A stretch of DNA of 63,442 nt, filler included, from Lenisia limosa (Eukaryota; Protista; Breviatea), in the NCBI GenBank assembly GCA_001655205.1. It is 17 parts of 17 records of this genome, joined end to end, with 100 filler letters (N's around TTAATTAATTAA, not from the genome) between each part and the next. Parts side by side here need not be neighbours in the genome. Positions count along the whole stretch, not along the records: positions 60,550 to 62,274 come from LPNZ01009968.1; 16 more parts are not named here. The stretch is one strand, 5' to 3'. The notes under the pieces were generated by a model, which had not been told where the DNA came from, searched no databases, and saw only the letters and a program-made list of their open reading frames with translations. Position 1 is the stretch's first letter. Every line of letters starts with the position of its first letter. A program made the position numbers and the translations under genes. Below, piece by piece: positions 60,450 through 62,436 of this stretch.

Positions 60450-60725
60450 NNNNNNNNNNNNNNNNNNNNNNNNNNNNNNNNNNNNNNNNNNNNTTAATTA
60501 ATTAANNNNNNNNNNNNNNNNNNNNNNNNNNNNNNNNNNNNNNNNNNNNGCCCTTGATGCTTATGCGTTGGGGGGAGGGGGGTCAGAATGGGTGGAGTTA
60601 AAATTGTTTTTTTTCCCACCCATTTAAAATATTATATTGTTTTTCGAAAACACTTCCATATCAATCTCGATTTTGTTTTAAGATAGTGTTTTACTCTTCA
60701 ATTTTCCGTTTTTACCCCCACCCCA

Positions 60726-62200
60726 GACGTTCAGTAATACCCGTGTCTGCTGTCAACGGATTTGTTGACCAGTTCTACAAGATCATGACTTACGAAATCT
60801 TCTCTGGTGCTTGTGCTAATGTGCGGGGGGGGGGGGGNNNNNNNNNNNNNNNNNNNNNNNNNNNNNNNNNNNNNNNNNNNNNNNNNNNNNNNNNNNNNNN
60901 NNNNNNNNNNNNNNNNNNNNNNNNNNNNNNNNNNNNNNNNNNNNNNNNNNNNNNNNNNNNNNNNNNNNNNNNNNNNNNNNNNNNNNNNNNNNNNNNNNNN
61001 NNNNNNNNNNNNNTTTCCGTTCGGACTCGGACTGCGGCTCCTGCGGTAACGCGTGCGAAACGGGTGGGTCGAAGTTAGGTCTCATAATTCAGGGTTTTTC
61101 TGACAAAATGAGTTTTAATACCTGCAATACCTGTTTTCCCAATTCCCAATGCAAGAGATCAGGAGTCCCAAATGCAATTTCCAATATTTTCCCTTATGAA
61201 TGCAGAGGACATTTGTCTGGATAGCGTCTGCAAGAACATTTACTGTGACCTTCTGGACCAGTGTGGAGCCGAGTGTGTCAACAAAACCACGTCAGCTGAC
61301 CATTGCGGCACGTGCTTTAACGCGTATGTTCAAGGGTATCTTTCATGTCGTTACCTCCAAACCACGTATTATTTTCCTGATGCAGTACTCATCATAAATC
61401 GATGGTGTTACGTACATATCTATACACATATGACACCGCCCTAGATGTGATGGCATGAGCTCGTGTGAAGATGGCGTCTGTATCACGGCCGAATGTGGCG
61501 CCACGTGCAGTACTTGCGCCGACCCCATTTCCACCCCGGATGTTTGTACCGACTGTATCGTAGGGGGTGCAGGGTGGGGGGTTGGTGTTGTGTCTTGGAG
61601 GAGGGGTATTGACATGCAGAGGTGAGAATTTGTGGTGTCAAATCTAGTGCTGTGCTTCATAAGTGAGCGATTGATTAAATAAAATTTTAACAATTTTTAG
61701 CTTATTTTATCTACCTCCTCCTGAGTAGGTATAAAATTAAATTTTTATTTAAACTAAAAAAATAAAAATCAATCGCGACCTTACCATAGTGTATTGTAAA
61801 CACGCCATTGATTTCTGCTTTATATTCCCCAGGACGGGCAGTTGATTTTGGGCTTTTTTTTGTTCATAAATGTTCCCATTTTACTCCCCAGGACGGGCGT
61901 ATGNNNNNNNNNNNNNNNNNNNNNNNNNNNNNNNNNNNNNNNNNNNNNNNNNNNNNNNNNNNNNNNNNNNNNNNNNNNNNNNNNNNNNNNNNNNNNNNNN
62001 NNNNNNNNNNNNNNNNNNNNNNNNNNNNNNNNNNNNNNNNNNNNNNNNNNNNNNNNNNNNNNNNNNNNNNNNNNNNNNNNNNNNNNNNNNNNNNNNNNNN
62101 NNNNNNNNNNNNNNNNNNNNNNNNNNNNNNCCTGTGATGAAACCTGCGACACCTGTGCGGACTCCTTTGACGCTCCCACCGTCTGCTCCACCTGCAAGGT
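60726..62200 (+). CDS. Cys-rich surface protein with Stig1-like and furin/VSP-like repeats, fragment
   Basis: DCGSCGNACET, CGAECVNKTTSADHCGTCFNA, CGATCSTCADPISTPDVCTDC, CDETCDTCADSFDAPTVCSTCK. Confidence 0.7.
61826..61898 (+). mobile_element. 5'-truncated family A copy flanked by 14-bp direct repeats
   Basis: tccccaggacgggc (61826-61839), then a 45-bp A 3' end (61840-61884), then tccccaggacgggc (61885-61898). Confidence 0.9.
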
Positions 62201-62436
62201 GGGACTTGTAAAAACATGGGGATGGAAGGATATGTTTTTCCAATCTAAGTGGTTTCTCTTCTCGCAAGCCCCCANNNNNNNNNNNNNNNNNNNNNNNNNN
62301 NNNNNNNNNNNNNNNNNNTTAATTAATTAANNNNNNNNNNNNNNNNNNNNNNNNNNNNNNNNNNNNNNNNNNNNGATGATGATGATGATGGTGATGATGA
62401 TGACGGTGATGATGGTGACGATGATATTGTTGTGAA

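Follow-up and report, generated by a model that had tools for sequence, protein, structure and literature searches.

Structure of the locus

The window analysed here is a 63,442 nt stretch of the Lenisia limosa genome (assembly GCA_001655205.1), and all positions given below refer to it. The piece of interest (nt 60550–62274, from LPNZ01009968.1) is made up of three contigs, separated by N gaps at nt 60839–61013 and 61904–62130, and carries exons and introns of a gene for a cysteine-rich protein. The features relevant to the present description are as follows.

nt 60567–60726, plus strand: sibling intron, 160 nt, starting with GTT + G6AG6 and ending with TTTTTAC + C5AC4 + AG (ends from RNA splicing)
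nt 61445–61559, plus strand: upstream exon, a Cys-rich module ending ...CTDCI (from RNA joints and translation)
nt 61560–61891, plus strand: intron as spliced today, 332 nt, GT..AG (from the RNA contig of run X2)
nt 61660–61783, no strand assigned: palindromic repeat of MITE-like type, nested in that intron, with arms at nt 61660–61690 and 61737–61783 (fold z -2.8)
nt 61730–61831, plus strand: resident intron sequence at the 3' side, homologous to the corresponding part of intron 60567–60726
nt 61826–61839, plus strand: upstream copy of the 14-nt repeat, comprising the last 7 nt of the resident intron (TCCCCAG) and 7 former exon bases (GACGGGC)
nt 61840–61884, plus strand: insert of 45 nt, corresponding to the 3' part of a very high-copy repeat
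nt 61885–61898, plus strand: downstream copy of the 14-nt repeat, containing the acceptor in use (AG, nt 61890–61891; RNA loose end ACGGGCGTATGAC...), with the exon running from nt 61892
nt 61892–61903, plus strand: start of the downstream exon (GACGGGCGTATG), extended by the RNA contig into the N gap with ACAAACATGGCCGGAGCGT

The 14-mer TCCCCAGGACGGGC occurs twice, at nt 61826–61839 and 61885–61898, with 45 bases in between, and no third site was found in nt 60550–62274 even when up to 2 mismatches were allowed. By chance, exact 14-nt direct repeats lying no more than 100 nt apart would be expected about 0.0005 times in the 1,323 real bases of this piece. The initial annotation had reported an exact 14-bp direct repeat flanking an insert of 45 nt, and its coordinates, the exactness of the repeat and the length of the insert (nt 61840–61884, unique inside nt 60550–62274) are all correct, but the letters it quoted for the insert include one T too many (46 letters, with 9 T instead of 8).

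The total gain is 59 bases, consisting of the tail end of an abundant intron repeat together with a copy of the target site, and it sits exactly on a splice acceptor. This insertion on the acceptor is real, and it is recent. The GACGGGC of the upstream repeat copy was once exonic and is now intronic, and the AG that precedes it (nt 61831–61832) is bypassed, as the RNA contig does not use it. The TCCCC that opens the downstream copy (nt 61885–61889) is matched by other copies of the family too, and may be the element's own sequence.

Splicing across the insertion

A 500 nt poly-A RNA contig from run X2 covers nt 60727–60821, 43 nt lying in the first gap, and nt 61014–61063, 61206–61323 and 61445–61559. 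Its joints are 60821/61014, 61063/61206, 61323/61445 and 61559/GACGGGCGTATGAC, and beyond nt 61559 it reads ACGGGCGTATGACAAACATGG. Since GTATG follows only the downstream copy of the repeat, this mRNA is the one expected from the AG at nt 61890–61891. The question of which AG is used, and the view that splicing is preserved through the downstream one, can therefore be answered in favour of the latter: the mRNA matches splicing at the downstream acceptor copy, so that the insertion is removed with the intron and the coding sequence is unchanged. Minus the 59-nt insertion the intron would measure 273 nt, and it has thus grown from 273 to 332 nt. An insertion-free allele would give the same mRNA, so the RNA contig falls short of strict proof that the inserted allele is spliced at its downstream AG, and a minor isoform would escape contigs of this kind; the RNA run derives from sample S2 and the DNA run from sample S1.

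After splicing, the reading frame is open and codes for Cys-rich modules (...CGATCSTCADPISTPDVCTDCI before the joint, DGRM... after it). With the upstream AG (nt 61831–61832), the mRNA would be 59 nt longer and frameshifted, and would reach a TGA two codons into the exon, a prediction for which the first gap base was taken from the RNA contig. The insert contains two candidate branch points, TTCAT (A at nt 61866) and TTTAC (A at nt 61883), as well as a pyrimidine tract, and these yUnAy motifs lie 25 and 8 nt from the downstream AG. Judged from these motifs, the insert may bring its own 3' splice signals. It created no new intron, as it lies inside a pre-existing one and has only moved the acceptor 59 nt downstream.

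Support for the assembled sequence

The second copy of the repeat lies only 5 nt from a scaffold N gap, and the insert is high-copy, both of which would suit an assembly artefact in which two haplotypes or repeat copies had been chained together beside the gap. Two public runs, both from one study, contain the stretch: X1, whose kind is unrecorded, includes 100% of the sampled words, and X2, which is poly-A RNA, includes the exon share. A Logan contig of run X1 (1,263 nt) reproduces nt 61014–61903 (890 nt) with 0 differences, extends about 190 nt further at both ends, and continues through the stretch where the scaffold has Ns. The duplication is therefore not an artefact of a contig end or of gap closing. 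X1 is probably the sample from which the genome was assembled, so the comparison amounts to a second assembler working on the same reads, and not to an independent sample or individual; this probable sharing of reads also counts on the side of an artefact. Against it stand the identical sequence produced by a different assembler well past the gap edge, the junction words (GACGGGC then AGTTGATT), which are unique to the locus and must exist in the reads, and the length of the repeat, which at 14 nt is shorter than the assembler word and should make a false loop unlikely. An artefact of this type is scarcely credible. As regards an empty allele, no contig has a joint that skips the 59 bases, among contigs that drop rare variants.

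The repeat family and its ends

The summed contig depth is about 10,150 over nt 61826–61883, relative to about 24 on either side. Although summed depth is not the same as copy number (a warning given by the tool itself), we read the family as having hundreds of copies. In all, 134 short contigs are 90–95% alike over the insert. Six contigs extend upstream of nt 61840, where their sequence is partly common (agreement 0.67), and as these other copies are longer at the 5' side, the insert appears to be 5'-truncated at nt 61840. Three more match from nt 61856 only and have unrelated flanks before that point; these may represent further truncation points. The comparison of 5' ends was based on 30-nt consensus snippets only. 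The insert had been described as a 5'-truncated member of a repeat family, and the abundance data and the longer copies both agree with this.

On the 3' side, contigs leave the shared sequence at nt 61871, 61887 and 61889, and the 3' ends cluster at nt 61884–61889. In at least 8 other contigs the match extends through TCC or TCCCC (nt 61885–61889), after which come C-runs (13 C, at least 15 C) or TCTCCAG. The family had initially been taken to end at TTTTAC(T), which is not so, because other copies continue into a C-tract of variable length: the run is 4 C in the insert copy (the 4 C it has in common with the target), and 13 and at least 15 elsewhere. One loose end (TTTTACTCC then TCTCCAG, followed by exon-like sequence) is found in 2 contigs, and another group of loose ends enters AT-rich sequence that has no AG.

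The insert has no poly-A tail, and no reverse transcriptase or endonuclease (RT/EN) partner of the family was seen in the 1.3 kb of genome covered. Scans of the piece for tRNAs and Rfam families gave no match for this copy, which lacks its 5' part. Searches for further family copies returned two matches in a metagenome scan, both to a 20-nt pattern only (L001, a bacterial contig, and L002, which is unrelated), and 0 matches in both the viral and the prokaryote genome scans.

Sibling introns and a nested repeat

The last ~55 nt of intron 60567–60726 align with the whole of the insert plus CCCCA (shuffle p 0.0025). Placement is of the Introner type, in that the insert copy and this related 3' end both lie at RNA-confirmed acceptors. 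In addition, intron 60567–60726 and the pre-insertion intron (nt 61560–61832) have about 100 nt of 3' sequence in common (nt 60625–60720 and 61730–61831; 66/91 identical, a score reached by 5 of 3000 shuffles). As the resident intron end is homologous to the sibling, the acceptor that was struck was the end of an older intron repeat. On the strength of this alignment, the two sibling introns appear to be members of one intron-repeat family.

In three introns of the gene (beginning at nt 60567, 60822 and 61560), the initial GT is followed after one or two bases by a G-run: G6AG6 in the first (nt 60567–60582), at least 13 G in the second (nt 60822–60838), and a degenerate G-rich stretch of about 45 nt in the third (nt 61560–61606). 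Two introns of the gene end in a C-run and AG. The 5' end of intron 60567–60726 also resembles the reverse complement of the insert end (GGGGGGTCAGAATGGG vs GGGGAGTAAAATGGG, p ~0.05), but the inverted similarity in this sibling is weak beyond the G/C runs (p 0.03–0.11), consisting mostly of G-run against C-run. The insert copy itself shows one end only, and so no terminal inverted repeats. Inspection of the older introns (nt 60567–60726, 61064–61205, 61324–61444 and the pre-insertion 61560–61832) by reading revealed no target duplications of more than 1 nt.

Part of the palindromic MITE-like repeat (nt 61660–61729) is matched by three other X1 contigs, with 4–5 differences. Its right arm is loosely similar to the reverse complement of the insert (p 0.006).

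Size of the target duplication

Since the family's own end (TCCCC) overlaps the repeat, the true duplication is 9–14 nt long, and 14 nt is an upper bound. If the element brings the AG as well (CCCCAG), the duplication would be 7 nt (GACGGGC), and the insertion would have occurred 7 nt behind the acceptor, in the exon; Introners often bring a splice site. All three readings (14, 9 and 7 nt) give an identical sequence. An insertion with a target duplication that spans the acceptor, as first described, is thus upheld, while its size of 14 bp is to be taken only as a maximum. The repeat, at 14 nt with a core of 9 or 7 nt, fits the range of target-site duplications (TSDs) of non-LTR elements (typically 7–20 nt), as judged from one copy. 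DNA transposons, among them hAT, P and Mutator, likewise produce TSDs of 7–9 nt, and for this reason the size of the duplication alone is no proof of reverse transcription.

Origin of the insertion

The best reading of the locus is that the insert copy was made via RNA, by target-primed reverse transcription (TPRT), although we hold it tentatively, at somewhat below even chances, and one locus cannot tell RNA from DNA movement of a repeat. A nick in the bottom strand at the 5' edge of the repeat would leave ...CTGGGGA-3', which could pair with the C-rich 3' end of the element RNA (...UUUUAC UCCCC) and prime cDNA. Synthesis that stopped early would yield the 5' truncation at nt 61840, and a second nick, in the top strand 9–14 nt away, would give rise to the duplication. 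The branch-point candidates and pyrimidine tract of the insert would then explain use of the downstream AG. In favour of TPRT are the exact 14-nt repeat around the insert, reproduced by the second assembler, and the 3' ends that cluster at nt 61884–61889 and are followed by C-runs of differing length. A homopolymer tail that varies in length among copies is retroposon-like. A truncated copy with its break against an intact target duplication is a product of TPRT, as seen with non-LTR elements, and is hard to obtain by cut-and-paste; in L1 elements, the A-rich start of the duplication pairs with the poly-A tail in a similar manner. C-tailed retroposon families, however, are not known to us. Introners derived from non-LTR elements have been described from other protists (PMC12130899).

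Evidence against TPRT is that a single locus is involved, that there is no poly-A and no RT/EN partner was seen, and that the TSD is perhaps only 7–9 nt. The G-run and C-run ends of the sibling introns and the palindromic MITE-like repeat of the same intron suggest DNA transposons, and provide the main argument against the mechanism proposed in the initial annotation, which had favoured a TPRT retroposon over a cut-and-paste Introner. The truncation and the flanking duplication fit that proposal; the size of the TSD, the tail and the TIR-like siblings keep a DNA Introner in play.

The element may, then, have moved at the DNA level, as a MITE-like Introner of the TIR type, the insert being an aberrant product (of one-ended or abortive transposition, or a fragment captured at a staggered break). 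The true duplication would be 7–9 nt (GACGGGC or AGGACGGGC), and the identity over TCCCC(AG) would reflect the C-run and AG with which both the incoming element and the resident intron end, the latter being an older member of a related family. The element end does overlap the repeat, as the match of other copies extends through TCCCC before they enter C-runs, and the resident intron end and intron 60567–60726 are homologous, both ending CCCCAG. The G-run starts of the introns at nt 60567, 60822 and 61560 mirror the C-run ends, one of them is like the reverse complement of the insert end (see above), the palindromic repeat is nearby, and TIR DNA transposons account for about 82% of classified Introner families (PMC12130899). 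Cut-and-paste, however, gives whole elements, and gap repair retains both termini; for a break to lie directly against an intact upstream duplication, a further event at precisely that position would be needed. Outside the G/C runs, the inverted similarity is weak, and a C-run that differs in length among copies is unusual for a terminus bound by a transposase. Nor is identity at all 7 intronic bases guaranteed by homology, as the sibling intron ends in ACCCCAG and not TCCCCAG. A DNA-level origin of this kind is a serious rival to TPRT, if somewhat less probable. Considerably less probable is a local tandem duplication of the intron 3' end and 7 exon bases (by slippage or unequal exchange), with nothing inserted from elsewhere, with later divergence of the upstream copy and a loss of about 24 nt from it. 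Just ahead of that copy, 20 nt (TTGATTTCTGCTTTATATT) are loosely like the start of the insert (TTGATTTTGGGCTTTTTTTT), and both units end in CCCCAGGACGGGC, but this similarity is not above chance (shuffle p 0.24; p 0.09 with a longer consensus), and the history would call for a divergence of about 25% in one part alongside 0/14 in the other. Depth argues in the same direction: nt 61768–61825 are single-copy (25.6) and the insert is about 400-fold deeper, which means that the insert, unlike the upstream stretch, closely matches a dispersed family. We also considered, and rejected, a longer and diverged duplication upstream of the 14-mer, as its similarity is no higher than expected by chance.

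Comparison with known systems

In animals, Alu and L1 insertions near 3' splice sites include 5'-truncated retroposons with a TSD near the acceptor and pyrimidine-rich sequence that affects the choice of AG. Such insertions usually disturb splicing or create new exons, unlike the present case, where the duplicated acceptor restores the original mRNA. By analogy, the locus would work like a retroposon insertion beside a splice site, within a population of Introner-like repeats.

About 72% of Introner families are unclassified or have no known transposition mechanism; among those classified, the TIR majority noted above compares with about 5% that are non-LTR-derived, such as those of Amoebophrya sp. 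A120 (PMC12130899). With the latter, which are copied through RNA, the Lenisia family shares its nature as an abundant, intron-resident repeat (PMC12130899), and the insert copy resembles non-LTR elements in its apparent 5' truncation, its common 3' end and a duplication within the non-LTR size range. It differs from non-LTR-derived Introners in that no RT/EN partner, homology to a known element or poly-A was seen in 1.3 kb, in having a C-run as its tail, and in that it lengthened an existing intron at the acceptor and created none.

Classic Introners have TIRs and duplications of 3–8 nt, with a splice site supplied by the element or by the duplication (PMC11282704, PMC9860276, PMC7789003). 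The TIR/MITE Introners of Micromonas, Aureococcus, Polarella and Amoebophrya (PMC9860276, PMC11282704, PMC7789003) are likewise short, non-coding and very numerous intron-forming repeats. As in these, either the element or the duplication provides one splice site, and the G-run and C-run ends of the sibling introns resemble short inverted termini. In contrast to their fixed TSDs of 3–8 nt and two termini, the insert copy has the 3' end only and a repeat of up to 14 nt.

Possible acceptor targeting

The initial annotation inferred that the family inserts at existing acceptors. A donor-less, truncated copy could be found at an acceptor through selection alone, as elsewhere in an exon it would be disruptive. 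It is tolerable on the acceptor because the duplication rebuilds the acceptor downstream, leaving the mRNA unchanged. Among the other copies, the loose end that runs into TCTCCAG fits acceptor targeting, and the AT-rich group of loose ends is without AG. A more specific scheme, which we consider unlikely, is that of a non-autonomous retroposon whose 3' tail is C-rich (poly-C) and whose cDNA would be primed by the G-run opposite the C-run tract of an acceptor. Such an element would home to the 3' splice sites of introns left by earlier members, duplicating the acceptor each time, and its own branch point and tract would make it harmless to the host. If true, an acceptor-homing Introner retroposon of this kind would explain the G-run and C-run intron ends in this genome.

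Young copies whose target duplication is still intact can serve as molecular fossils that reveal the mechanism. Scattered 5' truncations, long and variable duplications and C tails across the family would point to an Introner of retroposon type, unusual in its tail and inserting preferentially at acceptors, while TIRs and a fixed short TSD across the family would make this locus an aberrant by-product of an ordinary MITE-like Introner. Retroposon-derived Introners have already been published, but a C-tailed, acceptor-homing one would be new if borne out family-wide.

The host gene

The host gene, or gene family, consists of tandem Cys-rich modules. Pfam returned no family for four exons of the gene, and an exact protein look-up of five ORFs of the piece found none in the collection. 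A word search with a 90-aa ORF, which covers proteins of 50–157 aa only, was blank. When the exon at nt 61446–61559 was compared with 1.8 billion proteins by HMMER, 3 weak, repeat-level matches were obtained (best E 2e-9), all on unrelated contigs: Bacteroidota-like PKD and CHU_C (bacterial surface) proteins, and one unassigned contig.

Both scaffold gaps adjoin homopolymer runs or repeats, the probable cause of the breaks in the assembly. The first (nt 60839–61013) contains the 43 nt of exon seen in the RNA contig, and the intron that begins at nt 60822 (GTGCG13...) is unassembled there as well. Within the intron that received the insertion, nt 61613–61641 (AG followed by GTGAGAATTTGTGGTG) align with the start of the body of intron 60567–60726 (TCAGAATGGGTGGAG); the same site resembles a strong but unused donor, 62 nt downstream of the used one, and the frame is open up to that point. 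Beyond the second gap, the exon at nt 62131–62203 recurs in both DNA and RNA contigs, in which joints that go back to it are separated by 243–355 nt, and its variants carry C, T or G at nt 62165.
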